This document shows, in pieces, positions 3,468 through 63,498 of a DNA stretch of 64,000 nucleotides (positions within the stretch are counted from its first letter, which is position 1; every line of letters begins with the position of its first letter). The DNA comes from Styela clava (lineage: Eukaryota). The notes under the pieces are model-generated. The model had not been told where the DNA came from and ran no database searches. It saw only the letters and a list, made by a program, of their open reading frames with translations. The stretch covers positions 5,642,001 to 5,706,000 of the forward strand of contig NC_135260.1 in the NCBI RefSeq assembly GCF_964204865.1, in the 5' to 3' direction. The translations under genes and the position numbers were made by a program.

Positions 3468-6424
3468 ATGTGGAAACGTTCAAAACTCTTCAATTGCAAA
3501 TGGTTGTTTATCATGATAATTGGTGAGATCTTACTTACATAAATAATTCTTACAAAATTACAACTATGGGGAGGCATAAGTATTGCTTCACATTAATTTG
3601 ATAACAGCAAATTTTATTTTAAATTTTTTTTTTTGTCCAATGAATTTGCCTCGATATTAAACCAATCACAATAAATTAGAGATCACATTATGAAAATTTT
3701 AATATGATTTTTCAATTTCTCAAGTGTTTAAAAACAGGAATAAAAAAGTTTCATACATTATATTAATAGCTTAGTTAAGACTTTGTACGTATTACAGATA
3801 TAAACAGATTACATCATTAAAATATGGAGGTCTTTCAATTCCGAAAAATTCAATTTTGAATGCAATTGATCTAGTTTTTGTAATCCTTATAGTACTCATC
3901 ATTGGTCTGAATGGAGCACGAACATGCACTGATTGTCGCAGTGTAACGCTTAGTACAGAGAACAAGAATATCATACATGGACCAAGTAATGAATACAACT
4001 GCAACTGTGATTGGACAATACCAACAAGTATGGAGACAGATCATGAAACTGCAGTTGTTCTGTTGTTACAAAATGTTTCACTTCCAAAGACAACTAGTAG
4101 TGGAAGTATAGACTGCAGCGGAGAAATCAGACTCCCAAGTAAGTTTTAACTGATGTAAGTAGGCTATTCAAGGATGACATCTCCAACATCAAAACATTCG
4201 TTTACTTGACAATATTAATTTGTTTCATGCAGGATGGGATGGATATAAATGTGAATTTCCAAGCAACTACTGTCTTGCATTTGCAACTGCATCAACCGTT
4301 TGCAACATCAACAAAATCAGAGAGAAAATTTCAGTTGCAAATCACACCTGTGATTCAATCATTCCGTGGAATTATGCTGGAGGAAGCCCATACAAGATAC
4401 ATTACTATGCAGCAAACCGTGCTGGTTACACTAAATACTTCACAATACAATACCATGTAATAGATTGCAGACCAACAACAACCACACCTGCACTCAGTGA
4501 GTAAATTCAATATTTTTATGCAATGCTTAATCATGTCTTATGCTCAAGTAGTCACAGATATGCCAATCTATAAAGAACCATAATTATCAAACCCGGGTGA
4601 GGTGGTGGGATGAGGGGAACCTGAGATGTGTAACCTACAACTGGAGTGGGCAAGGTTTTGGACTAGGGGCCAGAAATTTTGCCCATCTAGAATGACGGGC
4701 CATGTAAGTATAACGTGAAAAGTCACATTTTATGAACGATACTTAGTGTTACAAAAGCAAAAGTGGAAAACAATAAGTCTCATGCTAAAACTAAATCAAT
4801 CGCAATCTCAACAAATTCCTTGAGCTATTTTTAGCTAAAATATCAAAATTTAGTTTTAGTTTGGTTATGGCAGCATCAGGCGGGCCAAATTGAACTACCA
4901 AACGATCCGGATTTGGCCCGCAGGCTATAGTTTGCCCATGTCAGTCCTACAATGTGAACACAGTTTAAGTGTAACAACTTAACCCTGTGGTAACACTAGT
5001 GGTACGTACGTGGAAGCTTTCAAGTGGTACGCGAGTAGTTTGAATTATTGCAACAATTAACTTTTGAGTTGGCTAAAATATGGCAACAACGGGTTTATAT
5101 CAGCAGTTCTTGTTTTGAGACAGCCCTCGCCCGCTACTGCCCACCTAAAACGAAACAATGGACAAAACCTTCAACCCCTGATGGCAATCAACGCAAATTC
5201 TATCGTGATTTTGCACGCAATTAACACGTTGTTACTGCATAAAATAAATACTTCGAAACTTTGCAGGAGATCTAAAATGGATGTAGTGCTACATAAAATA
5301 CTATCATAGCGCGTTTCTTGTGCCATGGTTCCCCACCACAAAATAAAGTTTTTTCGGTGGTACGCGGCCAGAGTAAAAAGAACAAAAGTGGTACCGGTCA
5401 GTGGAAGATTGAGAACCGCTGCCTTAACCAATAAGGCCAGGCGATCATGCCCATATTGCTCTTGTTGAAACGATATAACATAATTTCAGGATGTGAGAAT
5501 CAAACTTTTATTACAAAATTTTAGCCACGGTAACTGAGCAAGCAACAACAACAGCAACTCATCAAAAAGATACATCATCTAATAAAATAGACTTTGACTC
5601 AACCAGTGAATCAACCAGAACATCTGGCAATGTTCAATGTTCAACTGAAAACAGTGAAAGCTGCAGCTGCCAAACATCACTGATCATCGCTATCCCAGTA
5701 TCAGGAATTGTGAGTTTGATCGTTGGGGCTTTGTTGACGTTCATAATACCAAGGTAAGCATAGATATTGTATATTAAATGAATGTCAATGAAAATGCATA
5801 AATTACCAAGTGGGCAATCTATCAAGTACAAAAAAATGTGTGCCACTCTGCCTCAGGGTTGACAAAATTTGAATACAAGTTTGAAAAAATAAAACCCAAT
5901 TTCAGCCAATTTTGTATAACAAATTATTTCGTTGAAAATGTTGCCATTTGCAAAATCCAAGTTTCATGGAAAACTTTTGGATACATCTTTTAACTCTGAT
6001 GCCAAAAAAATTTATATCAACTACAGTCTCGGATCCAATTCCAGCTAAATATGACAAACTTGACTGTTTATCGTAGATTCAGTGACGTCAGAAGCAGATA
6101 TTAAAACAGCAAATGATTACCGGTAGTCTCAATTACAGTATCAAGTAAATACATATAGTAATTATTAACTCAGAATCTCAGATTATATTTCTATCAAACA
6201 CCAGGTATTGCAATAACAACAAGAAGAAACCAAAGAACAACGATTCAATGGAAATGGGAAGCATTCAACATCAGCAGCCAACTGTCCATGAACGAACAAC
6301 ATATGAAAACTACACACCAACATCAGATGAAAGTGGATATGAAGTTCCGATTCCAGTTGATAACAAGAATGAACAACAATATGAGATTATAACAACTGGA
6401 AAGGAATATCAATATGATAATTGA
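3468..6424 (+). CDS. Copy 1: CUB-like domain type I membrane receptor with Tyr-motif tail, full length (~337 aa)
   Basis: Exons 3468-3522, 3893-4138, 4233-4496, 5525-5753, 6205-6424. All introns are GT-AG with phases 1,1,1,2 and the frame is open. Signal MWKRSKLFNCKWLFIMII; CDWTIP...YFTIQY; TM SLIIAIPVSGIVSLIVGALLTFII; tail YENY, one YEVP unit, YEII, YQYDN. Confidence 0.88.
4641..4944. mobile_element. hAT-like MITE in intron 3 (also at 10918-11222, 21261-21564, 57320-57634, 62888-63141)
   Basis: Ends C(A/T)GGAGTGGGCAA and TTGCCCATGTCAG. The 8-bp TSD tcctacaa is perfect in copy 4. Confidence 0.65.
4985..5421. mobile_element. hAT-like insertion specific to intron 3 of copy 1
   Basis: Absent from paralogous introns. 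Right end ttgagaaccgctg, TSD acttaacc/ccttaacc. Confidence 0.75.
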
Positions 6425-8962: not shown

Positions 8963-9388
8963 GAGTAATCAATAGATATATCAATGAGTAAGTATATTAC
9001 CAATTCAAAATAATATCCATGAACAAAGAAATTCCCACACTCCTACACAAATGGCAAACATTACAAAATGTCAAGATAATACATGCCACAAGAAGATCAT
9101 CACAATGTTGTAATGATAATTCGCCTACATTCTTAATCATAATATTAATATAAGTCAGCAATCATTACGTAGTAGCAACCAGACAGAAGTGTTTCATGGT
9201 CACTGATTCACATTAACAAGGAGAGATTCTGAATATAAATCAGAAGCTTGTTACATCAAGTGTTGAGGCAGGTCTTGTATTTTGTCAGTTGGATTTTGCC
9301 TTTATCTATGTCAGTACTGAGTAATGGATTAAGGGATTGGAGAGAAAACAAAAAGAAGTTTAAAGAAGTTGCTGAAGATAAACTCAAC

Positions 9389-12313
9389 ATGTGGAAACAT
9401 CCAAAACTCTTCAATTGCAAATGGTTGTTTATGCAGATAATTGGTGAGATCTTACTTACTTACAATAAGTTTAGTTACACATTCTGCTGTTACACAACCA
9501 ACTGTGATGGGCATTATTAGTTTCAAATTATTTACAATTACAGTAATTTGAAATTGTCTCACCAAATTATAATAAGCAAATTCTTTAAAATCAAATCGCG
9601 GACAATTGAGGTTATTTAACTTTTGTTTTCAAAACATATTTCACATCCAGATTCAATATAAAAATATTATATAATTTTAACTATTTTGTCTTTCAAATAC
9701 CTCGAATGTTTAAAAAAGGAATAATTAAGTTTTATACAATTATTCATGGATTTAAGAATCTGTAATACAATTGAAAAAGGATTATAAAATATATTTGATT
9801 TATAAATGTGTTTTAAAATTCGTAGTACTTCCAATTAAAAAAAATAAGTTCTATTGCAAATGAATAATCCCTTTTTAGCATTTAGTATTGATCTGAATGA
9901 AGCAGCACCCTGCACTGATTGCTCTAATATCATACTTGGAACAGAGAGCATCAATATAACATATGGACCGAATATGAATGAATACGATTGCAACTGTGAT
10001 TGGACAATACCAACAAGTATGGACACAGATCATGAAACTGCAGTTGTTCTGTTGTTACAAAATGTTTCATTGCCATTGACAACTAGTATTGGAAGTATAG
10101 ATTGCTCTGGAGGAATCAGATTCCCAAGTAAGCTGTATTATACTAATTACCGTACTGTTAATATACTACCGTATGCTATTCTAATATACAGCAACAATGA
10201 ATAAAAAACATCAGTAACTATAAAAATGCATAAAACCTTCACAGGAACGGATAGTTACAAATGTGAATTTTGGTGATCTCTGGTCTACAAAATAGGCTAA
10301 TAACAATGCAAACAAATATGTAATGTTTTAAATTAGAGGTTTGTAAAGCTGCAGTACATAAACAAAGCACACAGACGCTATGCTTATATTTATGACAAGT
10401 TGATACGACATTTGCGGACCCATGTACTTGATTACTGTATACCCTTCTAAAATACAGCAGCGATTAATAACAAAAAAACATTAGTAAATACCAAAAATGT
10501 ATCAACACTTTTATAGGCAATGCTCCTCACAAATGTGATTTTGCAATCAACTACTGTCTTGCATTTGCAACTGCATCAACCGTTTGCAACATCAACATAA
10601 TCAGAGAAAAAATTCCAGTTGCAAATCACACCTGTGATTCAATCATTACATGGAATAAAGCTGGAGGAAGCCCATACAAGATACAATATTATGCAGGAAA
10701 CTATGCTGGTTACACAAAATACTTCACAATACAATATCTTGTAATAGATTGCAGACCAACAACCACAACTGCACTAAGTGAGTAATTTTTTTTTATGCAA
10801 TGCTTAATCATGTCTTATGCTCAAGTAATCACAGATATACCAATCTATAAAAAACCATATTTATCACACCTGGGTGAGGTGGTGGGATGGGGGGAACCTG
10901 AGATGTGTAACCTACAACAGGAGTGGGCAAGGTTTTGGACTAGAGGCCAGAAAGTTTGCCCACCTAGAATGACGGACCATGTAAGTATAACGTGAAAAGT
11001 TACATTTTATGAACGATACTTAGTGTTACAAAAGCAAAATTGGAAAACAATAAGCCTCGTGCCAAAACTAAATTTAATCGCAATCTCAACAAATTCCTTG
11101 AGCTATTTTTGGCTAAAATATCAAAATTTAGTTTTAGTTTGGTTATGGCAGCATCAGGTGAGCCAAATTAAACTACCAAATAAGCCGGATTTGGCCCGTG
11201 GGCTGTAGTTTGCTTATGTCAGTCCTACAATGTTAACACAGTTCAAGTGTAACACCTTAACCACTAAGGCCATACGATCACGCCCATATTGCTCTTGTTG
11301 AACAATATAACTCAATTTCAGGATGTGAGAGTCAAACTTTTATTACAAAATTTTAGCCATGGTAACTGAGCAAGCAACAACAACAGCAACTCATCAAAAA
11401 GATACATCATCTAAAAAAATATACTTTGACTCAACCACTGAATCAACCAGAACATCTGGCAACGTTCAATGTTCAACTGAAAACACAGAATGCAGCAGTT
11501 CCCAAACATCACTGATCATTGCTATCCCAGTATCAGGATTCATGGGTTTGATCATTGGAGCTTTGTTGATGTTCATAATACCAAGGTAAGCATAGATATT
11601 ATATAATAAATGAATGTCAATGAAAATGGATAAATTACCAAGTGGGCAATCTATCAAGTACAAAAAAAATGTGTGCCACTCTCCACCTGAGAGTGATACC
11701 TGCTTCAAGAATGACAAAATTCAAATACAAGTTCGAAAAAATAAAACCCAATCTCAGCCAATTTTGTATAACAAATTATTTTGTTAAAAATGTTGCCATT
11801 TGCAAAATCCAAGTTTCATGGCAAACTATTGGATACATTTATTGACTCTGATGACAAAAAAATTTATATTAACTACAGTTTCGGATCCAATTCCAACTAA
11901 ATATGCCAAACTTGACTGTTTATCGTAGATTCAGTGAAGTCAGAAGCAGATATTAAAACAGCAAATGATTACCGGTAGTCTCAATTACAGTATCAAGTAA
12001 ATACATATAGTAATCATTAACTTTGATTATATTTCTATTAAACACCAGGTATTGCAATAACAACAAGAAGACACCAAAGAACAAAGATTCAATGGAAATG
12101 GGAAGCATTCAAAATCAGCAGCCAACTGTCCATGAACGAACAACATATGAAAACTACACACCAACATCAGATGAAAGTGGATATGAATATCTGAATCAAG
12201 TCGATAAAAAGAATAAACAAAGTGGATATGAAGTTCCGATTCCAGTTGATAACAAGAATGAACGACAATATGAGGTTATAATAACTGGAAAGGAATATCA
12301 ATATGACAATTGA
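9389..12313 (+). CDS. Copy 2: CUB-like membrane receptor, full length (~352 aa)
   Basis: Exons 9389-9443, 9879-10127, 10517-10777, 11357-11585, 12049-12313, open frame. Two tail units (SGYEYL and SGYEVP). Confidence 0.88.
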
Positions 12314-14617
12314 AAGCTTTGACATATCTTTTTCACAGTCACGAAACTATGCCACAGAAATCTTGTAACATGAATTTTGGCAAAAACATGAACTAAACTT
12401 TGATCAGCACTTCGGAACAATTTATAAATTGTTTGCAACTGTGATATATTCTTTAACAACGTTTAACATATTAAATTATACTAATATACAATTGACTCTA
12501 ATTAATACTTTCCATGAACTTTTCCATGCAGTGCCTTATCTGGGAAAAATTCCAGCCCAAGCAGCCACTCAGCATATTCCATTAATATAGATGGTCTGTG
12601 AGTGAGTGTGCAAGAATAAATAACCAATGGACAAACCAAGATCTTTGCATAAGTGTCTAGATTAGTGGTTTTCAAACCTATAAGTACTGTCGCCCATTTG
12701 TTTGTGTCGGAGCTAAACACCCTTATGGTTCTACTTCCTTATTAATAAACAGGTATTTGGTATAACTTGCAACAAAATATATCAAATTTCTTTTTGCAAA
12801 AATTCATTTTGGTTTTCAATAATTTTGACTATTTAAAAAGAAGCATTACCCCCAAATTCTCCCTCCAATGTGACTCCTTCACCCCCAAGAGGACGCTACT
12901 GGTTTCTTATTATAACAAAATCCAGTTTACACAACTGGTGATTGACAAATGTCAGTATTTTTACATGCTTCTTAATCGCAATGAATTTGAAATGCTTCTA
13001 AAATAAGTATTCTTGCCTGTTTTCATATTTATTTTTCACTTCTCTTATGATTTTTCAACTTCCACTTCTGAGAATTATGTTGTTTCAAAGATTCTGTGAA
13101 ATGAATGAAATAAATTATACATATGTTAAATAAATATTTGCAGTTTTTCTTAACAAAAGTCTTCTTCTGGTTTGTGAATTAGATTTATTCAATATAAGAA
13201 GCAGGTCATAGTATAAACACTTTTCACTCCAATCAAGGCTCCAGACAAGCAGTTACTGGAAAAATGAAGAATACAACTTAAATACACAACTTTATACACA
13301 CCGTTAGCATCGTTCATTCATTAGAACACTATATTTAATTTGTTAACTCAACTCAAGTTACAAACTATATCACTCTATCCAAAGCTGTAAAAAAAACAGC
13401 CAGTGAGACATATAAGACTGCTGAAATCATAAACAGCATAATCTTTGCAGTTCAGCAAACATACATTAACCAACTGAGTTAGTTTAGGAGTGAATTGTTA
13501 AGTAGAACAAAATGAGAGCAAAATGAAAACCGAAATCTATTGGGACAAAACTAATCTAACAGGTATTAAGCTGTCCAACATATATTGAATATTGTATTAA
13601 AAATTGTATTCTTCTATTCTTAAATAATTCAATATAGATTGTGAAGCAAGGAAATGTTCCCTGAAGTCTGAATTATGATAGGAGAGAGATGAAGTCTGAA
13701 TTATAATAGGAGAGAGATAAGCAACATTTATAAATCTGAATCCTATATATGTTCACTGTAGTGAAAAAAAACTGACTGAAGTATATAAAAATATGAATGA
13801 GGGGAAGCACTACCCACTTCTCTCAATAAAAAGGAAAATAGATGTGAATCATGATTGAGTAAATCTACAATTTATGGTGACTGTGGATATAGCCCCACCC
13901 TAAAAACTACACCCATTAATAAAAATTTACCTAATAAATAATTATAGACAGAAGATGGCTAGATATCTGAAGATGACATACTTCCTGATTGTCGATTGAC
14001 ATTCTGACAATTTCTTCACCTATGAGTGATAATTCAACTTCCTATAAACCAGAATGAATGATGATCGTAGTACGTAATACAATAAATATTTATAATCAGC
14101 AGTATTCAGTGAGCATTGCTAATAATTTTAGTAGAGGGGAACTAGTTTGAATTAATTTTCTAGGATTTATAAGTTTAGACATTATTAGTAGACTGAAATA
14201 AAAGAACAACAATTTACAAGAATATTTCTGTAATGTTTCATCTGACCAAAGACAGACTTCCTCATACAAAGAGTTTACAACAATCAGGAATCTTGGAAAG
14301 TATAGTTATGTTCATTTCTTCTACAGCATCCTTGCATTATTCGCATACGAATCGACAAGCATAGAGGGCATAAAAGACCGATGGGAATTAGTCTTGCGTA
14401 ACCTAGCACACCATTTACAAGATGTCGCAATAATACAGAAATGACATTTTCAAGTTTCCTTTGATTAAAAATCTTCCACAAACGGTTTTCAGCAATGTGG
14501 CTAAGAATGAAATATCACTTTACAGTATCTTTGACATCTCAAAAGGTTTATTTCAAAATGGCCTACGAAAGCATTTTCTCATTTCAGAACACGACCCAGT
14601 CCTATAGTGGAGTAATC

Positions 14618-14823
14618 GGTACTCCCGTAGTATATGTACCAGGGTTAGGCCATGATTTTCTTCCGATTTTCCTTATTTCAGTTTTACCACAAGTTCGGGG
14701 ACTGTCTGTGTTGGCCAATTGAATATACCACATCATAGGTTTCAATCAATTCATACAACTTGATGTAAAGTAGGAGAACAAAATTAATTACCTCCATATT
14801 GGTATATACAATTCTGGAGTGAC
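14618..14823. mobile_element. Merlin-like MITE upstream of copy 3
   Basis: Same element and insertion site. Confidence 0.7.
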
Positions 14824-15252
14824 GAGTTATCTATAGATATATCAATGAGTAAGTATATTAGCAATTCCAAATAATGTCCATCAAGCACTTGCAATCTTAC
14901 ACTTTTATACAAATGACAAACAAAAATGCCAAGACAATGCATGACACAAGTAGATCATCGCTATGTTGTAATGATATTTCGCCCACATCCTAATTATAAT
15001 AATAAATATAAGGCAGCAATCATTACAAAAAAGAAACCAGAGGGAAGGAAGTGTTTCATAGTCACTGATTCCTATTAACAAGGAGAAATTCTGAATATAA
15101 ATCAGAAGCTTGTTACATCAAGCGTTGAGACAGGTCTTGTATTTTATCAGTTGGATTTTGTCTTTAGCTATGTTAGTACTGTGTAATGATTTGAGTGATT
15201 GAAGAAACAAAGCAAAAAGAAGTTCAAAGAAGTTGCTGAAGATAAACTCAAC

Positions 15253-16756
15253 ATGAGGAAACATTCAAAACTCTTCAATAGCAAATGGTTGTTTATGCAG
15301 ATAGTTGGTGAGATCCCACTTACATAAATAGTTCCAAATCAAGAAATAAATGTACATTTGTTACCCAAAAACATAGTAGCCTGATGAATTCTCATCCAAA
15401 GTCATTCATGAAATAATAATTTTAATATTAGATTTTCATTAATATAAGATTTCTAAATTGTTTAAAAAGAAGAGTAATGGAGTTTTATACAATATAATTC
15501 TCAACCATGTATTAGATTGAGAAAATATCAATTCTATACATATAAACGTGTTTTGGGCTTCATGAGACTGATGAAAATTGGATAGATTTCGCAATGTTGT
15601 AATTGTAAAAACTTATTTCTTTATAGCACTAAGCATCAGTCTGAATGAAGCGGCATCCTGCACTGATTGTTCAAATCCAATACTTGGAACAACCACTTCT
15701 AAACCAAGTAAATCTTAAACAGCATAAAAAATTCAGTTTAAAAGTAAAACATCCAATCCTGAAATAAACTTTCCTTTCAAATTACAGCAGCAACAAATGG
15801 ATGGGAAACAACAACAAAATATCCAGAAGAAATTTCGACAACACTCAAAGCTGAACAGACTACAAAGCTGAACGGTCTACAAACGGAAATTTCGACAACA
15901 CTGAAAGCTGAACCAAATACAAAAGACAAAAGTAATGAAATTTTATTTGTCAAAACAATAGCAATTATCCAATACACAATCATAATAAAAACTAAACTTC
16001 ATGAATTTCAGTTAGTGAAGCTGAGCAGCAAACAACACTATCTGATTCAGACAGAACTGAATCTCATTCAACAACTGATTTGGACAAAAACATCACAGTT
16101 ACCACGGAAACCAATGGAAGTTCTGATTTATTGACAATTGCAATTCCATTGTCAGGAATAGTTGCTTTTATCTTGGGAGCTTTGTCAATCTTTGTCATAC
16201 GAAGGTAACAAGTAAAACAACACATAGTAGCAATAATTTCTCCACAATACTTTCACTTTGAATATCGTTTTGAAAATTCGGCGCAATTTCAAGGTTTCGT
16301 TTGAATGTGGTTGAACAATATGCTAATAAATATTTTTATTAATATTTTGAACCCAGGTATTGCAACAAAAACAAGAAACCGAAAAAGAAAGATTCAATGG
16401 AAATTGGAAGCATCCAACATCAGCAGCCAACTGTCCATGAACGAACAACATATGAAAACTACACACCAACATCAGATGAAAGTGGATATGAAGTTCCGAA
16501 TCAAGTTGATAACAAGAATGAACAAAGTGGATATGAAGTTCCGATTCCAGTTGATAACAAGAATGAACAAAGTGGATATGAAGTTCCGAATCCAGTTGAT
16601 AACAAGAATGAACAAAGTGGATATGAAGTTCCGATTCCAGTTGATAACAAGAATGAACAAAGTGGATATGAAGTTCCGATTCCAGTTGATAACAAGAATG
16701 AACAACAATATGAGGTTGTGAGAAGCGGAGCAGAATACCAATATGAAAATGCGTGA
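15253..16756 (+). CDS. Copy 3: receptor with in-frame deletion of the CUB-like domain, 5 tail repeats (~290 aa)
   Basis: Exons 15253-15307, 15627-15707 (start of exon 2 fused to end of exon 3, 81 nt), 15788-15931, 16012-16204, 16357-16756. Frame is open throughout. Confidence 0.82.
16481..16705 (+). repeat. Coding 45-bp tandem repeat x5 (SGYEVPxxVDNKNEQ)
   Basis: Unit agtggatatgaagttccga(a/t)tc(a/c)agttgataacaagaatgaacaa repeated five times. Confidence 0.95.
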
Positions 16757-19412
16757 ATGAGTGAAATAAATTCATCCAAACCTTTTGAATTGAAAAACTC
16801 GTGTTTTTTAGAAAAAAACACAAGTTATGGATTTCTCTCATGAAGAACTAAAATATTTATTTGTATTGAAGTCCAATTCATTTTGACTTCTGACTGAAGC
16901 AATGACAAATTGTGGAAGATTTTATAATTTGTGTTGTATTTTTTTTAATCAGGTCATTGTTTTATCAGAATTCTTCACATAATATATGAAGGATAGGGTT
17001 TTGAACTAAATATGAGTAGTAAGTATATTAATATATTTGAGTGTCCATAAAAAGCAATGATCTGAGAGGGATTGTCTGTACCCCTTCTTGTCATATTTTC
17101 GCTTGTCATTAGATGAAAGTGTGCTCATAATGAATAAAAATGAACGATTATGTTTCTGAATATCTTGAAAAATTTGATCACTATTTAGCTCTTTAAGCTT
17201 CGCTGAACTAATAATGGGTTATAAAGTCATGCTAACAATTGAGTTAAAAAGCTAACATTGAGACATCAAAAATTATGAGCAAAAGTCGTAACTACTGAAT
17301 TTAGGAAACTATGATAGTTCCACTCTGTACAGGTTTCACTTTCAACAACAATTTTTTGGCTAAAACATTTCAGTACGCACTTCAGCGTTTGAAATGAACT
17401 TTCTCCTACATGTCCTAGCTGTATTCCTAATAGCGATGTGCTCAATTATTTCAAGTCATTATCTACTAGAAACACTGTCCCTTAGAATGTCATTTGACAC
17501 TTACAAAAAATAGTCTTTTTAGTAAACAGTTCAGTTTTTTTAAGTCTTTCAAACTTCTAGAGCTTGAGACCATTCTTTGATTAAATTTTGGAGAAATATT
17601 CATTGCCTACTATAATTATTTCTACACCCATGCATTAATAATCTTGTGTGTTGACTTCTGATAGAAGTAAAAAAAAAAAAAAAAGAATTTCATATCATGG
17701 CAAAGAGAAAAACAAATAATACATGCTTAAATTGGTGAAATTGATAATTTTTCAAGTGAAACTATCCCAACAATATAATTTTCAACCATGTATGAGATTG
17801 AGAAAATATCAATTCTATACATATAAACATGTTTTTGGCTTTATAAGACTGATAAAATATGGATAACTTTTTTTGTTAATTCAAATACAGTAGACAAAAT
17901 ATAATTATTTTCGAATCGATTTGAATACCGGTAATTGATTTTGGACATTCCAGGGAACCTACCACTTTCAAACTAATATTTGCGACTGTTTCTGCATGTC
18001 TTTTTAAAATATCTTAGTGTTTTGTTTTGTTCAAACCATAATCAGTTTGCTATTGTTTAAATATAACATAAATAAATTTATTGTAAAATATTGAGTGCTG
18101 AACATTATTAAACAATATTTAATGGGAGTCACGACAAAAAGTATCACGTCACCAGAAAATGCTGTGATTACCTAATCGCCCACAATCTCGCAGTTTTAAA
18201 GCAGTTAGTAGTATGGGATAGGTTTAAAACTGAACTTCAAATGAAATTTAAAAATGACTGAAAAAGTTTAGTTGCAGCAGATAAGATGCAAAAATCCATT
18301 GACAGTAACCAGTAATGCTAACCAGTTTACTGATCTCATAAAATTCTGTAAGACGGTTTTATAGAACCGGTGCGAACCGGCTGAATTCCACCACTGAGCA
18401 TATCGAACTAATATAGAAACCCACTGAGTGAGTGTGCATGAGTAGGGACAAATGGACCAATAAATTTGGTCCGACCCGAAATAAAAGATACATGAATTCA
18501 TTGCTTAATCAAGCTACATTACTATAATTTAAACTAATAAACTGATATGCGAAAAATAATTGTTAATATTACCAATAGCAACTCTGCAATGTAAGAATAT
18601 CTGAATATGGCATACTTCCTGACTGTCGGTCGACATTCTGACACTTTTTTTCACCCATAAGTGATAAATCAACTTCCTATAAACCAGAATCAAACATGGT
18701 GATAGTACATTATACAATTAATATCTATAATCAGCAGTATTTGATGAAACAATCATCAGTGAGCATTGCTAATAATTTTAGTTTCTATCATTAGTCATAG
18801 AGGGAAACTCGTTTGAATTAATTATCCAGAATTTATAAGTTAGACATTATTAGTAGACTGAAATAAATAACAACAATTTACAAGATATGCAACTCAAGAG
18901 TCCTGGTACACACTAAGACAGATATAATTCAGATATAACGTTTCATCTGACCAAAATCAGACTTCCTCTTGTCATCATGCGGTTTAAATGTGGCGATAAA
19001 TAAATTTGTTTAAAAATAGTTGTGACCCAAATAATGAGTTAATTATTTATATTTAGAAACAGATTGTGACGAAAAAAATACAATCAGACTCTTGAATTGT
19101 ATAGTATGGTATTTTTATTCCTGCTACAGCATCCTTGCATTATCTGCATACGATTCCACTAGCGCAAGGGCATTGAGAAAGGATTGGGAGTTAGTCTAAC
19201 GCAACCTGTACTTATAATTTACAAGATGTTCCAATAATACGCAAATGACAATTTCAAGTTTCGTTTGGCTTTATTTTCCAGCAATGTGGTTGACAAGGGA
19301 ATCTCACTTAAACCTTACAGTAGGTTTGACATCTCAAATGCTTTCTTTCAAAATGGCCTACGAGAGTATTTTCACATTTCAGAACAGGACCCAGTCCTGT
19401 AGTTTAGTAATC

Positions 19413-19620
19413 AGTACTCCCGTAGTATATGTACAAGGGGAGGGCCATAATTTTATTCCAATTTTCCCTATTTTAGTTCTATTACGAGCTCGGGACTGTC
19501 TGTGTTAGCCAAGTGAATATACCTCCTGCCCATACGTTTCAGTCACTTTACACAACTTGGTGTAAAGTAGGCGAACAAAATTAGTTACCTCCATATTGCT
19601 ACATATACTACTGGAGAGCC
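19413..19620. mobile_element. Merlin-like MITE upstream of copy 4
   Basis: Same element and insertion site. Confidence 0.7.
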
Positions 19621-20112
19621 GAGTAATCAATAGATATATCAATGAGTAAGTATTTTAGCAATTCCAAATCATTCCCATCATCCACTAGAAACTAACCTGT
19701 TTAAGGACTGTTTGACCTATGAATCAAATGTTCTAAATTGTAACAAAGAAAATCTTACACTTCTATACAAATGTCAAACATTACAAAATGCCAAGATAAT
19801 ACATGACACAAGTAGATCATCGCTATGCTGTAATGGTATTTCACCCACATCATTAATTAAAAAAATAAATATAAGTCAGTAATCATCAGCCTATGTAGTA
19901 GAAACTAGAGAGAGGTGTTTCATATTCACTGATTCACATTAACAATGAGAGATTCTAAATTAAAATCAGATGGTTGTTACATTAAGTGTTGAAACAGTTC
20001 TTGTATTTTATCATTTGGATTTTGTCTCTATGTCAGTATTGTGTAATGAATTAAGTGATTGAAAAAACAAAGCAAAGAAAAGTTCAAAGAAGTTGCTGAA
20101 GATAAACTAAAC

Positions 20113-25251: not shown

Positions 25252-25457
25252 GGTACTCCCGTAGTATATGTACCAGGGTTAGGCCATGATTTTCTTCCGA
25301 TTTTCCTTATTTCAGTTTTACCACAAGTTCGGGGACTGTCTGTGTTGGCCAATTGAATATACCACATCATAGGTTTCAATCAATTCATACAACTTGATGT
25401 AAAGTAGGAGAACAAAATTAATTACCTCCATATTGGTATATACAATTCTGGAGTGAC
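25252..25457. mobile_element. Merlin-like MITE upstream of copy 5
   Basis: Same element and insertion site. Confidence 0.7.
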
Positions 25458-44651: not shown

Positions 44652-44659
44652 ATCCTAAG

Positions 44660-44827
44660 TGATTCAAGAGTCTTGCTGCACACTAACACAAATATATTTC
44701 TGTAACGTTTCGTCTGACCAAGGTCAGACTTCTTCAGACATACATACGTACATACATACATAACCTTGGTCAGACGAAACGTTACAGAAATATATTTGTG
44801 TTAGTGTGCAGCAAGACTCTTGAATCA
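44660..44827. repeat. Perfect 65-bp inverted repeat with a 38-nt loop containing (CATA)n
   Basis: 44660-44724 is the exact reverse complement of 44763-44827. Confidence 0.95.
44700..44741 (-). ncRNA. Minimal type I hammerhead-ribozyme-like motif (Penelope/retrozyme type)
   Basis: Minus strand reads ugu-CUGAAGA-a-gucugacc-uu-ggucagac-GAAA-cgu-u-aca: both core boxes, a perfect stem II, palindromic AACGUU in place of stem III and a short stem I. Confidence 0.6.
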
Positions 44828-45235
44828 ATTATGAGATTATTTCTGTAATATTTCATCTGACCAAAGACAGACTTCCTCAGATAAGGAGTTTACTACAATT
44901 GGATTGCATAGTATAGTAATGTTCATTCCTTCTACAGCATCCTTGCATTATACGCATACAGATCCACAACCATAAAGGGCATAGAAGAAGGATTGGAGTT
45001 AGTCTCGCGTAACCAAGCACACAATTTACAAGATGTCACAATAATACAGAAATGACATTTTTGTAAGTTTCGTTTGACTAAAAATCTTTCATAAAACGGT
45101 TTTCAGCAATGTGGCTAAAGACCAAATCACTTAAACTTTGCGGTAGGTTTGACATCTCAAATGTTTTATTTTAAACTGGTCTACAAGAGTATTTTCTCAT
45201 TTCTGAACAGGACCCAGTCCTACAGTTGAGTAATC

Positions 45236-45446
45236 GGTAGTGGAGTAGTATATGCATCAGTTTAGGGTTAGGCCATAATTTTATTTCGATTTTCTTTATT
45301 TAAGTTCTAGTACAAGTTTGGGGACTGTCTGTTTTAGCCAAGTGAATATACTCCCTGCCTAAAAGTTTCAGTCCCTTTATACAACTTGATGTAAAGTTGG
45401 CGAACAAAATTAGTCCCTATATATTGGTACATATACTTGGAGCGCA
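45236..45446. mobile_element. Merlin-like MITE upstream of copy 8
   Basis: Same element and insertion site, gagtaatc on both sides. Confidence 0.7.
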
Positions 45447-45915
45447 GAGTAATCTATAGATATATCAATGAGTAAGTATATTACCAATTTCAAATCATAC
45501 CCATGAACCACTAGAAACTAATCTGTTTAAGGAATGTTTGTCCTATGAATCAAATGTAATAAATCGTACCAAAGAAATTATAACACTCCTATGCAAATGT
45601 CAAACAGTACAAAATGCCACGATAATACATCACACAAGAAAATTATCGCTATGTTGTAATGATATTTCGCCCACATAATTATAAAATAAATATAAGGCAG
45701 TAATCATTACGTAGTGGCAACATAAAAAGATGTTTAACAGTCACTGGTTCACATCAACGAGGAGAGATTCTGAATATAAATCAGAAGCTTGTTAAGTGCC
45801 GTGACAGGTCTTGTATTTTGTCAGTTGGATTTTGTCTTTATTTATGTCAGTACTGTGTAATGAATTGATTGATTGAAGAAACAAAGCAAAGCAAGTTGCT
45901 GAAGATAAACTCAAC

Positions 45916-48260
45916 ATGTGGAAACATTCAAATCTCTTCAATTGCAAATGGTTGTTTATGCAGATAATTAGTGAGATTTTACTTACTAAAACTAAAAGCT
46001 AAAAATGAACAAATAAATGTACATTTGTCAATTAAAAACATAATAGTCCAATGTATTCTCATATAAATTTATTCATACAATAAATATTTTAATATTAAAT
46101 TTTCACTAATATTATATCGCTCAATTGTTTGAAAACAAGAGAAATAGAGTTTTATACATTATAACTTTTAAATTCTGTAATAAGATATGGAATATATAAA
46201 TATATGTATAAGAGCATTTTGGCAATATAAGCCCGCAAAAAAATTTGGATTGTTGAAATTTTATTGTAAAACTTTTCATAGCACTCAGCATCAGTCTGAA
46301 TGAAGCATGGGGACCATGTGCTGATTGTCCCAATATCATACTTGGAATAGAGAGTAAGAATATCACATATGGACCAAGTAATGAATACAACTGCCAATGT
46401 GATTGGACAATACCAACAAGTATAGAGATAGATAATGAAACTGCAGTTGTTCTGTTGTTACAAAATGTTTCACTGCCGATCACAACTGGTACTGGAAGTA
46501 TAGACTGCTCTGGGTCAATCAGATTCCCAAGTAAGCGTATATTATACTATTTTACTATTACTATACTACCGTACAGCAACAATTAATAAAAACATCACTA
46601 AATACATAACTATATCAATACTTTTACAGGCACTAATTCTCATAAATGTGATTTTCCAAGCAACAACTGTCTTGCGTTTGCAACTTCATCAACCATTTGC
46701 AACATGAACAAAATCAGAGAAAATATTCCAGTTACAAATCACACCTGTGATTCAATCATTCCATGGAATAACGTTGCAAGAGGAAGCCCATACAAGATAC
46801 AATACTATGCAGGAAACCGTTATGGATACACAAAATACTTCACAATTCAATATCTTGTGATAGATTGTAGACCAACAACAACCCCACCAGAAGCAGGTAA
46901 GTCATATACTTCTTGGTTTGCACATCTACACCAACACATAATTGTTTAATTCTCATAATGAAGATAAATTTATTTTCAGCGACAACAATGCAACAGAAAC
47001 AAACAAAAAAGGTTCCATTAACACTTGGAAGAATTATATGTGAAACAACAACTTTTGAAACCACCAAAATTACTGGTATGAATGAATCAAGTAAGTTCAT
47101 AAGTTTGCTTGTACGTCATAATTTTATGTCGATTTTCCTTATTTTAGTTATATTACCAGTTCAGAGACTGTCTGTGTTAGCCAAGTGAATATAAATAACC
47201 CTGCCTATAGGCTTTTGTCCCTTGATGTAAAAGTAGGGGAAAAAGATTAGTTACCTCCATATTGGTACACATACTTCTGGAGTGCCGTTGTTTTAAGATC
47301 AAATTCCTTGGATTTGTAAATAATCCTGTGTGAGATGTTTGACAGTTCAATAAAGAGTTTCTCTCCAAGATTCTGTTTTTCCAAACACTAGTAGATACTT
47401 ACCCAGCAGTGGCTGGCTGATTGTGTGTTCAGAGCGTAAGGCAAATGATACGTCTTGAAAAGCTATTCCAGTTGTAAAAAATCACTAAAGCCAAACAATT
47501 CTTTTCTAGAAATGACTACAAACACAAAAGAAACTGCCAGTGATCAAAAAATGTATAGAAAACTCAGATTCTGCATCCCTAACAATGATTGCAGTAGGTA
47601 CATCATCAGGATTTATTGTAGGAATCATCATCGGAGTTTTGACAACTTGCTTGATTCAGAGGTAAACAAGACAATTTACTGTTTTGTAAAATTAAAATAT
47701 TTCAAGAGCAATAAACTATTTAGTTTAGCTTATTTGATGCTCAAAAACAAAAAAAAAACTTTTGGAAATGGCTGTTCTAAGTGCTAACTTAACCAATTCA
47801 TTATTACCAAAACTTTATTAAAACCATAAAAAAAATTTTTTTTGATGGAAGATCGTATTTTACACTCGTTTGATGGATAATCTGCTTGATAAATAATAAA
47901 AATCTTCAATTTGTATCATTTTATTCAATATTAGTGTAATGAAAATAATTACATTATAATCCAGTCAAATACAGTATAAAAGGCTGTCAATGCAAATGTC
48001 AGTGCACCGTAATCATATTATTAAAAGTTGTAAAAATTATTGTAATTTGTAGATTATTGAGAAAAAAGAAGCAGAAAAACCAAATGGAAATGCAGAGCAG
48101 TCAACATCATCAACATACCACCATGAAAAATGCAGAATATGAAAATCATGAACCAACTTCAAACGGAAACGGATACGAAGTTATAATTCCAGTTGATAAT
48201 AAGAATGAAAGACCATATGAAGAGATAATATGTGGGATGGAATCTGCATATGAAAAATAA
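45916..48260 (+). pseudogene. Copy 8: copy with the most divergent stalk and tail; apparent +1 frameshift before the TM
   Basis: Exons 45916-45970, 46282-46530, 46630-46896, 46980-47090, 47510-47661, 48053-48260. Exon 47510-47661 is 152 nt where 151 is needed. Removing one A from the A6 run at 47546-47551 restores the TM (LTMIAVGTSSGFIVGIIIGVLTTCLI) and the tail (YENH, YEVI, YEEI). Confidence 0.7.
47115..47286. mobile_element. Partial Merlin-like MITE in an intron of copy 8
   Basis: Matches the body and right TIR (...catacttctggagtgcc). Confidence 0.6.
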
Positions 48261-51730: not shown

Positions 51731-53801
51731 ATGGATTCAAAAATAAAAATGATGACCTGCCAAAGCAGCATATGGATTCTCCTTGGTAAGAACATTTTCC
51801 ATATAGAATACTAATAGGATTTATTCATATTTATTCTGGAAGGGAGCAAATCATCTTGTCATGTGACAAATTATGGCCTCTCTGCCAGTTCCATGTTGGA
51901 TATGGGAAGAGTTAACTAGTTTATCTCCCACAATTATTCAGTACCAAAAGCAGCACATATTACCGAAATTCTAGATATAGTGCTCAAAAGTGGGCTTAAC
52001 CTGTTCTGGTAGGACAACAAATATCTTGTACCAGTCCATGAAAAACAATTGATTGAAGGTGAACGGTACAGATGCTATGAACACACAACTGCACCGATAT
52101 AGTAAAACTAGCAGTCAAAATGAAGAAATCCGAAATGATCTTTATATATTAATTGTGAATATTGAAAATATTACACCAATCTACAGTAAGCATAAATTAT
52201 ACAGAATGAGAAATGAATACCTTGTATATTTTTTTCAGCTATTATGATCAATGTGAATGAAGCATATCAATGCCCTAGTTGTCCCAAAATAACACTTGGA
52301 ACAGAGAACAAGAATATCACATATGGACCAAGTAATGAGCGGGACTGCCAATGTGATTGGACAATACCAACAAGTATGGCCACAGATCACGAAACTGCAG
52401 TTGTTCTGTTGTTACAAAATGTTTCATTGCCAATGACGGCTGGTAGTGGAAGTAGAGACTGCTCAGGAGAAATCAGATTTCCAGGTGAGTATTCAATACT
52501 CTTACGCAGGTAAAACTAGTTGTTGATGAAAATAAACTTTGTGCAGGTGCTAGTGGACACAGATGTGATTTTGCAAACAACCAGTGTATTGTTTTTACAA
52601 CTGAATCAACCATTTGTAACATGAACATAATCAGAGAGAAAATTCCAGTTGCAAATCACACCTGTGATTCAATCATTCCATGGAATAATGCTGGAGGAAG
52701 TCCATATAATGTACAATACTATTCCAGAGGCTATGTTGGTTACACAAAATACTTCACAATACAATATCTTGTGGTAGATTGTAGATCTTCAGCAACAACT
52801 TTTAAACCAAGTAAGTCATAAACAGCAAAAACATTCAGTTTAACAGTAAAACATCCAACACTAAAAATGAATCTTTTTTTTCTCAAAATACAGCAACAGC
52901 AAATGGATGGGAAACAACAACAAAGAATCCAATAGAAATTTCGACAACAGAAAAAACTGAACGGACTACAAAAAACAAAAGTAATAAAAGTTTATTTGTC
53001 GAAACAATAGCAATCATCCAATACACAATCATAGTCAAAATTATTATAAATTTTAGTTACCGAAGCTGAGCAGCGAACAACACAATCTGATTCCGGCATA
53101 ACTAATTCTCATTCCATATGTGATTTGGACAAAAACATCACCATCACCACGGGAATCAATGGAAGTTCTGATTCACTGATGATCGCAATTCCAGTTTCAG
53201 GAATAGTTGGTTTTATCTTTGGAGCTTTGTCAATGTCTTTCATACAAAGGTAAGAAGTAAAATAACAGTAGCAATATTTTCCCCTCGTTACTTTCAATTT
53301 GTATATTGCTTTTGAATATTGTTTTGAGAAATAGGCATAAGTCATTCCGGGTTTTGTTCGAATATGATTAAACAATATGCTATTAAATATTTTTAACCCA
53401 GGTATTGCAACAAGAACAAGAAGAAATTGAAGAACAAAGATTCAATGGAAATGGGAAGCATTCAACATCCAGAGCCAACTGTCCATAAACGAACAACATA
53501 TGAAAACTACACACCAACATCAGATGAAAGTGGATATGAAGTTCCGAATCAAGTTGATAATAAGAATGAACAAAGTGGATATGAAGTTCCGAATCAAGTT
53601 GATAACAAGAATGAACAAAGTGGATATGAAGTTCCGAATCAAGTTGATAACAAGAAGGAACAAAGTGGATATGAAGTTCTGAATCAAGTTGATAATAAGA
53701 ATGAACAAAGTGGATATGAAGTTCCGATTCAAGTTGATAACAAGAATGAACAACAATACAAAGTTATGACAACTGGAAAAGAATATGAATATGAGAATTA
53801 A
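51731..53801 (+). CDS. Copy 9: full-length receptor with a distinct first exon, 5 tail repeats (~414 aa)
   Basis: Exons 51731-51785 (MDSKIKMMTCQSSIWILL, 55 nt, gtaag donor; inferred), 52239-52484, 52547-52810, 52894-52980, 53057-53249, 53402-53801, open frame. Confidence 0.82.
53529..53753 (+). repeat. Coding 45-bp tandem repeat x5
   Basis: Same unit repeated five times in the tail exon of copy 9. Confidence 0.95.
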
Positions 53802-56124: not shown

Positions 56125-58537
56125 ATGTGGAGACATTCAAATCTCTTCAATTGCAAATGGTTGTTTATGCAGATAATTGGTGAGATCTTACTTGCATAAA
56201 AGTTACACATAAACAAATAAGTTCCAAATCAACAAATAAATGTAATTTGTTAACCAAAAACATAATACCCAATGAATTCTCATCCAAATTTAACCATGAA
56301 ACAATAATTTAATTATAATATTAGATTTACATTATTATTAGACTGCACAATTATTTAAAAACAAGAATAATAGAGTTTTATACATTATAACGTTTAAACC
56401 CTGTAACAAGATAGAGGAAATATCAATTGTATAAGTATAAGCACGCTTTTAGCTTTATGACCCGCAAAAACATTTGCAGAATTTTTGAATGTGATTGAAA
56501 AACTTATTTCTTTATAGTGCTTAGCATCAGTCGGAATGAAGCGGCACCCTGCACTGATTGCTCCAATGAAATACTTGGAACAGAGAGCAAGAATATCACA
56601 TATGGACCAAGTAATGAACACAATTGCAACTGTGATTGGACAATACCAGAAGCTATGGACACAGATCATGAAACAGATCATGTTGTTGTTCTGTTGTTAA
56701 AAAATTTTTCATTACCGAGGACAACTGGTAGTGGAAGTACACGCTGCTCTGGAGAAATCAGATTCCCGAGTAAGTGTTCAATACAATACAAGTGTTCAGT
56801 AAAGTAATTAAAAACACATGATGCTTCACTTGTTAGAGCAATATAATTGTTCTACAAGTATCAAATGGTCTGGGATAATTGTAATTAACTCAACAATACT
56901 AATGTAATTTATGCAGGCACTGATGGATACAAATGTGAATTTGCAAGCAACTACTGTCTTGTATTCGAAACTACATCAACCACTTGCAACATCAACAAAA
57001 TCAGAGAGAAAATTCCAGTTGCAAATCACACCTGTGATTCAATCATCCCATGGAATAGAGTTGGAGGAAGCCCATACAAGATACAATACTATGCAGGAAA
57101 CTTTGCTGGTTACTCAAAATACTTTACAATACAATATCTTGTGGTAGATTGCAGACCAACAACCACACCTGCAATCAGTGAGTAATTTCATTTTTTATCT
57201 AATGCTTAATCATGTCTTATGCTCAAGTAATCACAGATATACCAATCTATAAAGAACCATATTTATAACACCCTGTTGAGGTGGTTAGATGGGGGGAACC
57301 TGAGATGTGTAACGTACAACAGGAGTGGGCAAGGTTTTTGGACTAGAGGCCAGAAATTTTGCCCAACTTGAATGACGGGCCATGTTAGTATAACGCGAAA
57401 AGTTACATTTTATGAACGATACTTAGTGTTACAAAAGCAAAAGTGGAAAACAATAAGCCTTATGCCAAAACTAAATTAATCGCAATCTAAACAAATTCTT
57501 TGAACTATTTTTTAGCTAAAATATCAAAAATTTAAAAATTTAGTTTCAGTTTGGTTATGGCAGCATCAGGTGGAACAAATTAAATTACCAAACGATCCAG
57601 ATTTGGCCCGCGGGCTGTAGTTTGCCCATGTCAGTCCTACAATGTCAACACAGTTCAAGTGTAACACTTTAACCACTAGGGCCAGGCGACCATGCCCAAA
57701 TTGCTCTTGTTGAACGAAATAACTCAATTTCAGGATGTAAGAATCAAACTTTTATTACAAAATTTTAGCAACGGTAACTGAGCAAGCAACAACAATAGCA
57801 ACTCATCAAAAAGATACATCATCTTATAAAACATACTTCAACTCAACCAGTGAATCAACCAGAACATCTGGCAACGTTCAATGTTCAACTGAAAATAGTG
57901 AATGCTGCAGCTGCCAAACGGCACTGATCATTGCTATCGCAGTATCAGGAATTGTGAGTTTGATCGTTGGAGCTTTGTTGATGTTCATAATACTAAGGTA
58001 AGCGTAGATAGGAAGCATAGATAAATGTCGATGGAAATGCATGAATTTACAAGTCCACCAAGAACTGCGCAATCCATCATGTATAAAAATATTTGACAAT
58101 AACAAAACATTTGGTATGAAAATGTTGCAATTTGCAAACTTATAGGTTTCATGATATACTTTTTGATAGATTTTTTGAGTCAACAACTACAGTTTCGGAT
58201 CCAGTTCCATCTAAAATTCCAAACTATCATTTCGTCGTAGATCCAGTGAGATGAAGAAGCAGATATTAAACCAAATACATGCATCTATCAACTAACTTAT
58301 ATTTTATCAAACACCAGGTATTGCAACAACAACAACAAGAAACCGAAGAACAAAGATTCAATGGAAATGGGAAGCATTCAACATCAGCAGCCAACTGTCC
58401 ATGAACGAACAACATATGAAAACTACACACCAACATCAGAGGAAAGTGGATATGCAATTCCGGATCAAGTTGATAAAAAGAATGAACAACAATATGAGGT
58501 TATAACAACTGGAAAAGAATATCAATATGACAATTAA
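56125..58537 (+). CDS. Copy 10: CUB-like membrane receptor, full length (~338 aa)
   Basis: Exons 56125-56179, 56518-56769, 56917-57177, 57769-57997, 58318-58537, open frame. Tail unit reads SGYAIP. Confidence 0.88.
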
Positions 58538-61613: not shown

Positions 61614-63498
61614 ATGTGGAAATATTCCAAATTATTCAAATGCAAATGGTTGTTTATGCAGATAATTGGTGAGATCTTACTTACATTAAGTTTAGTAACA
61701 CATTCTGCTGTTACACAATCAACTGTGATGGGTATTATTAGTTGGTATTCGAAAGTTTCAAATTATTTACAATTACAGTAATTTGAAATTGTCTCATCAA
61801 ATTATGATAACAACTTCTTTAAAATCAAATCGCGGACAATTGAGGTTATTCAACTTTTGTTTTCAAAACATATTACACATCCAGATTCAATATAAAAATA
61901 TTATATAATTTCAACTATTTTGTCTTTCGAATACCTCGAATGTTTAAAAAAGGAATAATTAAGTTTTATACAATTATTCATGGATTTAAGAATCTGTAAT
62001 ACAATTGAAAAAGTATTATAAAATATATTTGATTTATAAATGTGTTTTAAAATTCGTAGTATTTTAAAAAAAAAAGGGTATATTGCAAATGAATAACTCA
62101 ATTCCTTTTTAGCATTTGGTATTGGTCTGAATGAAGCAGCACAATGCACTGACTGTCCAACTACAAAACTTGGAACAGAGAGCAAGAGTATCACATATGG
62201 ACCAATTTATAAATACAACTGCTGGTGTGATTGGACAATACCAACAAGTATTGAGACAGATCATGAAACAGCAGTTGTTCTGTTGTTGCAGAATGTTTCA
62301 CTGCCATTGACAACTGGTAGTGGACATACAGACTGCTCTGGAGAAATCAGATTCCCAAGTTAGATATATTTTAAAACTACTCAACTATTACTACACTACT
62401 ACGTTATATACAATTCTAATATACAGAAACAATTAACAAAAAAAAACATTAATACCGGTAAATACAAAATTGTATCAATGCTTTTACAGGCACTGATGGA
62501 TACAAATGTGAATTTGCAATCAACTACTGTCTTGTATTTGCAACTGCAGTAACCATTTGCAATATCAACAAAATCAGAGAGAAAATTCCAGTTGCAAATC
62601 ACACCTGTGATTCAATTATTCCATGGAATAAAGCTGGAGGAAGTCCATATGAGATACAATACTATGCAGCAAACCGTGCTGATTACTCAAAATACTTCAC
62701 AATACAATATCTTGTAATAGATTGCACACCAACAACATCTGCACTGAGTGAGTAATTTTTTTTTTATGCAATGCCTAATCATGTCTTATGCTCAAGTAAT
62801 CACAGATATAGCAATCTATAAAGAACCATATTTATCACACCCGGGTGAGGTGGTGGGATGGGGGAACCTGAGATGTGTAACGTACAACAGGAGTGGGCAA
62901 GGTTTTTGGACTAGGGGCCAGAAAGTTTGCCCACCTAGAATGACGGACCATGTAAGTATAACGTGAAAAGTTACATTTTATGAACGATACTTAGTGTTAC
63001 AAAAGCAAAAGTGGAAAACAATAAGCCTCGTGCCAAAACTAAATTAATCGTTTTAGTTTGGTTATGGCAGCATCAGGTGGGACAAATTAAACTACCAAAT
63101 AAGCCGGATTTAGTCCGCGGGCTGTAGTTTGCCCATGTCGGTCTTACAATGTCAACACAGTTTAAGTGTAACACCTTAACCACTAGGGTCAGGCGACCAT
63201 GCCCATATTGCTCTTGTTGAACAATATAACTCAATTTCAGGATGTGAGAATCAAACTTTTATTACAAAATTTTAGCCACGATAACTGAGCAAGCAACAAC
63301 AACTCATCCAAAAAATACATCATCTGATAAAATATACTTTGATTCAACCACTAAATCAACCAGAACATCTGGCAAAACTCAAAGTCCTATTAAAGACTGT
63401 GAATGCGACAGCACTGAAACATCACTGATCATTGCTATTCCAGTATCAGGAATTGCGGGTTTGACCATTGGAGTTTTGTTGACACTCATAATACCAAA
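61614..63498 (+). CDS. Copy 11: CUB-like membrane receptor, partial (tail exon expected beyond the window)
   Basis: Exons 61614-61668, 62113-62358 (weak gttaga donor), 62490-62747, 63276-63498, open frame. The following intron resembles the last intron of copy 4. Confidence 0.8.

Follow-up and report, generated by a model that had tools for sequence, protein, structure and literature searches.

In this work, a tandem cluster of receptor genes was characterised in a stretch of 64,000 nucleotides of the Styela clava genome (the window, C14:5642001-5706000 in an assembly of 377 Mb), which is free of N runs. The best explanation of the observations is that the window is the central part of a Styela-restricted tandem array, whose roughly 40 genes encode type I membrane proteins. 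This receptor gene family is real and undescribed, and the literature searched contains no description of it. We hypothesize, with moderate confidence, that its products would be phosphotyrosine-scaffold receptors with a CUB-like ligand-binding head, a reading based on sequence, on predicted structure and on analogy with known receptors. With the peptides of the four large exons as tblastn queries and a read-out of the open frames, 11 paralogous copies were located in the window, all of them on the + strand, which confirms the 11 same-strand paralogues claimed in a preliminary description of this DNA; its span was also correct, position 3468 corresponding to the start of exon 1 in copy 1 and 63498 to where exon C of copy 11 ends. 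The flanks were mapped too, and the array extends beyond the window over C14:5.5285-5.7874 Mb (259 kb), where about 40 copies lie on one strand at a spacing of about 5 kb; 34 of the mapped members have an ectodomain and five do not. The exon B query alone gave 41 matches in the genome. Additional copies are present on the same contig at 6.16-6.19 Mb (three, on the opposite strand) and at 19.05 Mb (two, divergent), as well as on C13 (one), and far more distant paralogues with 20-27% identity and identical architecture are found on at least four further chromosome-scale contigs. In the C13 member (P0001, L001:3747-4418, at C13:18.93 Mb) the A/B intron is in frame and stop-free, which gives an open frame of 224 codons, and the first ectodomain cysteine is replaced by Arg. 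This natural open frame, together with RefSeq model records, provided the full-length queries.

The genes follow a plan of five exons with intron phases 1-1-1-2, in which the ectodomain is split over two exons (A and B) and a short exon 1, located about 370-500 nt upstream, codes for the start of the signal peptide. The conserved phases noted earlier were read in copy 2 (AG/GT splice sites with phases 1, 1, 1 and 2), and the RefSeq models P0009, P0010, P0013 and P0015 use identical exons. The proposed layout of signal peptide, ectodomain with ten cysteines, Ser/Thr stalk, transmembrane (TM) segment and Tyr-rich tail was likewise recovered in the window paralogues. Six of the 11 window copies (1, 2, 4, 9, 10 and 11) are intact, and the remaining five (3, 5, 6, 7 and 8) are incomplete or broken; these include two copies without the ectodomain, one without the tail and one fragment, so the truncated members of the preliminary description are indeed there. 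The duplicated units are 77-98% identical, introns and spacers included, and the youngest pair (13120-18074 and 23760-28576), with a length of about 5 kb, is 95-98.5% identical.

A profile of 28 family members was compared with 1.84 billion representative proteins, and a broader profile with a word-indexed set of 5.8 billion proteins. Both searches returned S. clava proteins only, plus a single protein from a Logan contig (P0041), and no vertebrate match. Every named database match is an "uncharacterized protein LOC..." of S. clava and Pfam is silent on the ectodomain, in agreement with the earlier remark that the family was not a recognised one. P0041 consists of 347 amino acids (aa) deduced from a transcript contig of 1420 nt and has the same architecture. 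Its best match in the S. clava genome reaches 41% identity over the tail, so it is not encoded there and must belong to another organism. Compared with P0043 (C14:19.05 Mb), P0041 is 29% identical overall, and the block of YEVP and three QYEN[LF] motifs is almost unchanged.

The ectodomain comprises about 150 residues (30-181 of P0010) with 8-10 cysteines and three conserved N-glycosylation sequons, and it is followed by a Ser/Thr-rich stalk, which is probably O-glycosylated, and by TM segments with no charged residues. The ten cysteines, in the numbering of P0010, are C30, C33, C55, C57, C95, C109, C116, C126, C142 and C181. The motifs CxWxI, AVVLLLQNVSLP and FxxxY, to which the preliminary description had drawn attention, were found and are conserved; six cysteines and F172 do not vary among the distant paralogues, and C57, W59 and Y176 hardly do. 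It is highly probable that this ectodomain adopts a CUB-like fold that has diverged past sequence-profile detection, as judged from predicted structures. In the full-length AlphaFold model of P0010 the ectodomain has a predicted local distance difference test score (pLDDT) of about 80, and the ectodomain model of P0018, which was obtained with a more diverse alignment, has a mean pLDDT of 86 and a predicted template modelling score of 0.78 (81-86 across the five models by pLDDT). When models of two paralogues were submitted to VIA-align, ranks 1-21 and 1-22, respectively, were CUB domains throughout, with Z scores of 6.9-9.4 and root mean square deviations of 2.5-3.7 A over 97-118 residues. 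Each CUB domain was covered whole, and the superposition takes in the model residues between the first and the last cysteine. The structural matches include Gpr126, TSG-6, C1s, MASP-1, neuropilins, Kremen, cubilin, spermadhesin, PCPE-1 and enteropeptidase. The Foldseek matches at a probability of 0.8-1.0 were mostly CUBs, the best high-probability ones being CUB, and the neighbours found with a protein language model were CUB families (scores of 0.84-0.91, taken as leads only).

The likeness to canonical CUB domains (PF00431; CUB2 of C1s and MASP, TSG-6, neuropilin and Gpr126) thus lies in a predicted beta-sandwich that superposes on entire domains, with Z scores of 8-9.4 and deviations of 2.5-3.4 A over about 105 residues. 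An N-terminal Cys, CxW, a hydrophobic central strand, C-x-G-x-[IL] and a closing F-x-x-x-Y strand are also shared. Cysteines stand at the places expected of a CUB (the N-terminal Cys, CxW, C-x-G and the next Cys) and are accompanied by 4-6 extra conserved ones, as seen in the sequence. On the other hand, a canonical CUB has about 110 residues and four cysteines in two disulfides (C1-C2 and C3-C4), whereas the array domain has about 150 residues, 8-10 cysteines and an insert of about 40 residues beyond the canonical size, with a short helix at 128-134, and the Pfam hidden Markov model (HMM) matches the former but not the latter. A six-frame PF00431 search of the genome gave 137 canonical CUB exons, none of them within the array. 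According to a motif alignment, the A/B intron of the array genes lies after the C-x-G-E-I-R-F segment, and many canonical S. clava CUB exons end there too, at HMM position ~62; this shared intron site fits common descent, as far as such an alignment can tell. By motif alignment, the Glu/Asp/Asp calcium site of calcium-binding CUBs is apparently absent from the array domain. Canonical CUB exons form tandem groups of their own in this genome: nine single-CUB exons, about 7-15 kb apart, are arrayed at C3:15.71-15.81 Mb, and a second tandem group, at C19:9.355-9.389 Mb, consists of long open frames with multiple CUBs (619-898 aa).

Three types of cytoplasmic tail were distinguished in the array, namely a type with YxN and YEVP sites, which is that of the window, a type resembling the immunoreceptor tyrosine-based activation motif (ITAM-like, the copy 8 type) and a type resembling the corresponding inhibitory motif (ITIM-like), which belongs to a block upstream of the window. 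Motif counts in the tails upheld the earlier claim that they carry Tyr motifs, and two cytoplasmic tyrosines are nearly invariant among the distant paralogues. The window-type tail runs from TYENY through one to six SGYEVPxxVDNKNEQ units and QQYEV[IV] to a terminal EYQY[DE]N, and it contains three YxN sites, one to six YxxP (YEVP) sites and one YxxPhi site (YEV[IV]). The number of YEVP sites is set by a 45-bp tandem repeat, of which copies 3 and 9 have five units and copies 2 and 5 have two, with 95-97% matches where the repeat is well preserved. Because the ectodomain-less genes of the youngest pair of ~5-kb duplicates carry five versus two units, the repeat count evidently changes quickly. 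The ITAM-like subtype (copy 8, P0016 and P0030) has YEVI-x10-YEEI; this matches the ITAM pattern in its loose form and is distinguished from the common tail essentially by Pro to Ile. Eight ITIM-like (class-2) tail exons were mapped at C14:5.54-5.594 Mb; they encode CLYAVV and, 38 residues later, the strict ITIM SIYAVV, or the variant ALYSVV plus CVYAVV. The strict ITIM is carried by P0007, P0021 and P0025-27, all of which are encoded outside the window, and no ITIM tail was found among the window copies. YxxPhi was matched one to four times in every tail, and ectodomain-less forms occur with both main tail types. The identity of exon B is the same between tail classes as within them (74.4% in each case), and one class-2 exon B clusters with class-1 copies with a support of 97/97 in trees that are otherwise star-like. 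Strict receptor pairs did not emerge, the closest class-1/class-2 pair of exon B being 79% identical.

The receptor family is clearly spliced and transcribed, which holds for the family rather than for any single copy. In three RNA-like runs from three studies, the coverage of copy 10 was limited to its five exons, save for a high-copy intronic repeat, and the GT..AG joints 57177>57769 and 57995>58316 were present. In a DNA-like run all bins were covered and both joints were absent. Spliced transcripts, which the preliminary description had left to be checked, are therefore there by two signs, the exon-limited coverage and the joints. Many contigs from the runs are 1-7% off the reference, so they partly derive from paralogues or alleles. 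The repeat in question, probably a short interspersed element (SINE) or a miniature inverted-repeat transposable element (MITE), occupies 57365-57637 and lies in the intron between exons B and C of several copies. Its word depth is about 12,000-26,000 in the DNA-like run, compared with tens to hundreds elsewhere, and it is seen in the RNA-like runs too. ORF-like (open-reading-frame-like) stretches related to it at 10790-10995, 21120-21338 and 62748-62966 had no Pfam match.

The rates of substitution were estimated from pairwise Nei-Gojobori comparisons and from counts over independent pairs, in regions set beforehand from the secondary structure of the model; this design has no per-site power and ignores gene conversion. 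The median pairwise ratio of nonsynonymous to synonymous rates (dN/dS) was 0.55 for exon A and 0.57 for exon B, with dN exceeding dS in 6-7% of pairs. Within the ectodomain it was 0.50 in strands and 0.67-0.72 in loops, and the tail (0.50) and the TM segment (0.60) evolve at the same pace as the ectodomain. The loop at 163-169 alone exceeded one, with a ratio of nonsynonymous to synonymous proportions (pN/pS) of 1.6-1.8 and 53 nonsynonymous changes out of 62 (binomial p=0.08), so no significant positive selection was detected by pairwise and region counts. The word "variable" in the preliminary description therefore stands as a description and not as a sign of diversifying selection, since only one loop is above one, and not significantly. 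Judged from the sequences compared, purifying selection is confined to the cysteine and hydrophobic framework of the family.

The window copies, all on the + strand, are as follows. Copy 1 (3468-6424) is an intact five-exon gene corresponding to RefSeq model P0015 and has one YEVP unit; its exon 1 is at 3468-3521, exon A at ~3892-4138, exon B at ~4238-4493, the stalk/TM exon at ~5521-5754 and the tail exon at ~6203-6424. Copy 2 (9389-12313; P0009) is also intact, with phases 1, 1, 1 and 2 and the 45-bp unit twice (YEYL, YEVP), and its exons, with AG/GT sites read off the sequence, are exon 1 at 9389-9442, A at 9879-10127, B at 10517-10777, C at 11357-11585 and D at 12049-12313. Copy 3 (15253-16756), the body of P0073, is ectodomain-less and has an extra stalk exon, the TM segment and a tail with five YEVP units; its 45-bp coding repeat spans 16479-16705 (five units, 97% matches), each unit encoding the 15-aa SGYEVPxxVDNKNEQ and hence one YxxP site. 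Copy 4 (20113-22863) has all five exons intact, the stalk exon being longer. Copy 5 (25887-27255), a recent duplicate of copy 3, is P0075-like and ectodomain-less with two YEVP units, and in both copies 3 and 5 the initial ~22 residues of exon A continue directly as stalk sequence. Copy 6 (31066-32371) is a fragment made up of exon 1, A and B, in which B ends in a stop after YYAGN and the stalk, TM and tail exons are absent. Copy 7 (33288-35088) lacks the tail exon, like P0008, and consists of exon 1, A, B, stalk and TM. Copy 8 (45916-48260), of the ITAM-like subtype (YEVI, ten residues, YEEI), has a frameshift at ~47549 in the stalk/TM exon and is a probable pseudogene on account of this frame change; the RefSeq prediction for it, P0018, is a secreted form of 190 aa. 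Copy 9 (51731-53801), close to P0023, is intact; its A/B intron is short, and its 45-bp repeat occurs five times (53527-53753). Copy 10 (56125-58537; P0010) is intact and is the one with exon-only RNA-like coverage. Copy 11 (61614-63499; P0013) has exons 1 to C inside the window and its tail exon 90-302 nt past the end (C14:5706090-5706302).

In the RefSeq annotation, P0073 apparently joins a first exon upstream of copy 2 (9308-9442) to the body of copy 3 (15620-16756), P0009 being without a first exon, and P0003 is a fusion of copies 6 and 7. These joins represent either mis-annotation or read-through splicing between adjacent genes. The 11-kb gap at 35100-45900 contains no family exons, only short open reading frames with no Pfam matches, and the intergenic and intronic open reading frames of the window as a whole had no match in Pfam. 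An Rfam scan of the whole window at the gathering threshold gave no RNA family, the hammerhead included.

According to the reading that we favour, the CUB-like domain would bind an extracellular protein or glycan, and the short, unstructured, Tyr-rich tail behind a single TM helix may be phosphorylated by Src- or Abl-type kinases. The phosphorylated tail would then form a docking scaffold for SH2 proteins, its YxN sites being putatively of the Grb2 type and its YEVP (YxxP) sites of the Crk/Nck type. Since YxxP scaffold, ITIM-like and ITAM-like tails coexist in the array, opposing outputs from similar ectodomains are possible. Several points weigh against a phosphotyrosine-scaffold receptor with a CUB-like head. 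Pfam hmmscan at E<=10, run on single exons and on full-length proteins, gave no ectodomain match and no CUB, with sub-threshold matches to the stalk and TM only, and a sequence profile search of the PDB matched TM segments only. The VIA-align Z score of ~9 is a modest excess over the background of 7-8 stated by the tool, and the Foldseek E-values are weak (0.006-0.1, all above 0.001). Short Tyr motifs are permissive patterns, and YxxV/I fits AP-2 sorting signals as well. That the runs are RNA is the tool's guess, and cross-mapping between paralogues makes it hard to tell which of the copies is expressed. In addition, dN/dS is ~0.5-0.6 everywhere, tail included, as would fit weak constraint, and a number of copies are broken. 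The CUB idea of the preliminary description hence survives in the predicted fold, through the structure search and the language-model neighbours, and fails at the sequence level, where Pfam CUB and the PDB profile are silent. Its interpretation as a whole is retained as regards an uncharacterised family, a CUB-like predicted fold, splicing, truncations and Tyr tails; its immune or allorecognition reading, taken up below, is not supported, and the window copies have no ITIM tails.

Another explanation, put forward in part by the preliminary description, is that the array is a paired activating and inhibitory recognition system of blood cells, immune or allorecognition, and a CUB-like analogue of KIR/LILR/Siglec or of Hydractinia Alr. 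The birth-and-death features of the tandem array and its truncated members would suit such a system, as would the three tail types (strict ITIM SIYAVV 38 residues after YAVV, ITAM-like YEVI-x10-YEEI and YxxP scaffolds), the equal exon B identity between and within tail classes (74.4%) with one cross-class grouping at 97/97, and the pN/pS of 1.6-1.8 in loop 163-169. However, positive selection is not significant (p=0.08 for a single loop), the tail and TM segment change as fast as the ectodomain, and the TM segment has no charged residue for binding an ITAM adaptor. Furthermore, Styela clava, a stolidobranch ascidian, is solitary and lacks colony fusion that would need regulating, the motifs are defined by permissive patterns, and five of the 11 copies in the window are not complete. 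A role of the array in immunity or allorecognition, drawn by analogy, is speculative, and we regard the paired system as unlikely. By extension, stolidobranch ascidians might use CUB-based, not Ig-based, multigene paired receptors on blood cells, with ITIM-like, ITAM-like and YxxP tails, to discriminate self from non-self or to detect pathogens. This bolder proposal seems rather improbable to us, but, if true, it would mean that the paired-receptor logic of natural killer and myeloid cells was independently invented in the sister group of vertebrates.

The proteins could also be endocytic, scavenger or adhesion receptors, in which the CUB-like domain captures a ligand, YxxPhi signals (YEVI, YAVV) mediate AP-2 uptake and the mucin-like stalk acts as a spacer. 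One to four YxxPhi matches in each tail are consistent with this, and several CUB proteins are endocytic receptors or co-receptors, cubilin, neuropilin and Kremen being among the structural matches. Nevertheless, the YEVP and YENL units, which are conserved and amplified by the repeat, do not constitute sorting signals, and a need for about 40 copies with three tail types is left unexplained, so we have little confidence in an endocytic or adhesive function. A young, weakly constrained, lineage-specific family under neutral birth and death, in which many copies are dispensable or decaying and the tail motifs are leftovers of the repeat, would account for the uniform dN/dS of 0.5-0.6, the five truncated or broken copies out of 11 in the window, the star-like trees and the 77-98% identity of duplicated units with their introns. 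The framework residues speak against it, six cysteines and F172 being invariant and C57, W59 and Y176 nearly so at only 20% paralogue identity, as do the tail motifs kept in P0041, which the S. clava genome does not encode, the dN/dS below one and the splicing of the transcripts. Purely neutral turnover is thus very unlikely in our view.

Tunicates are the closest relatives of vertebrates, and they have no MHC (major histocompatibility complex), T-cell receptors or antibodies. The recognition receptors of tunicate blood cells are a long-standing open question, for which the array provides a concrete set of about 40 candidate genes; their exons are defined and a confident model of the fold is available. 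It is a large, expressed, lineage-restricted array that couples one non-Ig domain to three kinds of Tyr-motif tail. Even if its function is not immune, it illustrates how far a CUB domain can drift past profile detection and how a coding repeat of 45 bp can determine how many docking sites a receptor carries.

By comparing the array with known systems, resemblances of several kinds are seen. With fester, uncle fester and FuHC of Botryllus, which is in the same ascidian family as Styela, and with Alr of Hydractinia, it has in common that clustered, lineage-restricted type I membrane proteins are encoded in a marine invertebrate. These allorecognition proteins contain sushi, EGF or Ig domains, unlike the array domain, and the array profile searches (1.8 and 5.8 billion proteins) gave no named relative outside Styela. 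In common with KIR, LILR, Siglec and SIRP, there is a tandem multigene array in which similar ectodomains are placed on differing tails (ITIM-like versus docking or ITAM-like), with truncated, tail-less and soluble-type members side by side. The inhibitory [SIVL]xYxx[IVL] tails of KIR, LILR and Siglec are matched by the SIYAVV array members outside the window. The ectodomain of these vertebrate receptors is Ig-like (or a C-type lectin), whereas that of the array has a CUB-like predicted fold, and there is no homology. Their activating members combine a charged TM residue with an ITAM adaptor, whereas the array proteins have an uncharged TM segment and motifs in their own tails. The nearest functional parallel is DCBLD1/2. 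These single-pass receptors carry a CUB domain, and once phosphorylated by Src-family (Fyn) or Abl kinases, their YxxP tails are bound by the SH2 domains of CRK/CRKL (PMC6029619). The array proteins resemble DCBLD1 and DCBLD2 (ESDN) in being type I single-pass proteins with a CUB-type ectodomain and an unstructured tail with multiple YxxP sites, which is a functional resemblance only. CDCP1 is presumably similar. The array proteins differ from DCBLD1/2 in that they have no discoidin or LCCL domains by Pfam and no detectable sequence homology. DCBLD1/2 are one or two conserved genes, whereas the array consists of about 40 tandem paralogues, each with one atypical CUB-like domain of 8-10 cysteines, a mucin-like stalk and a number of YxxP sites that varies by means of the 45-bp repeat.

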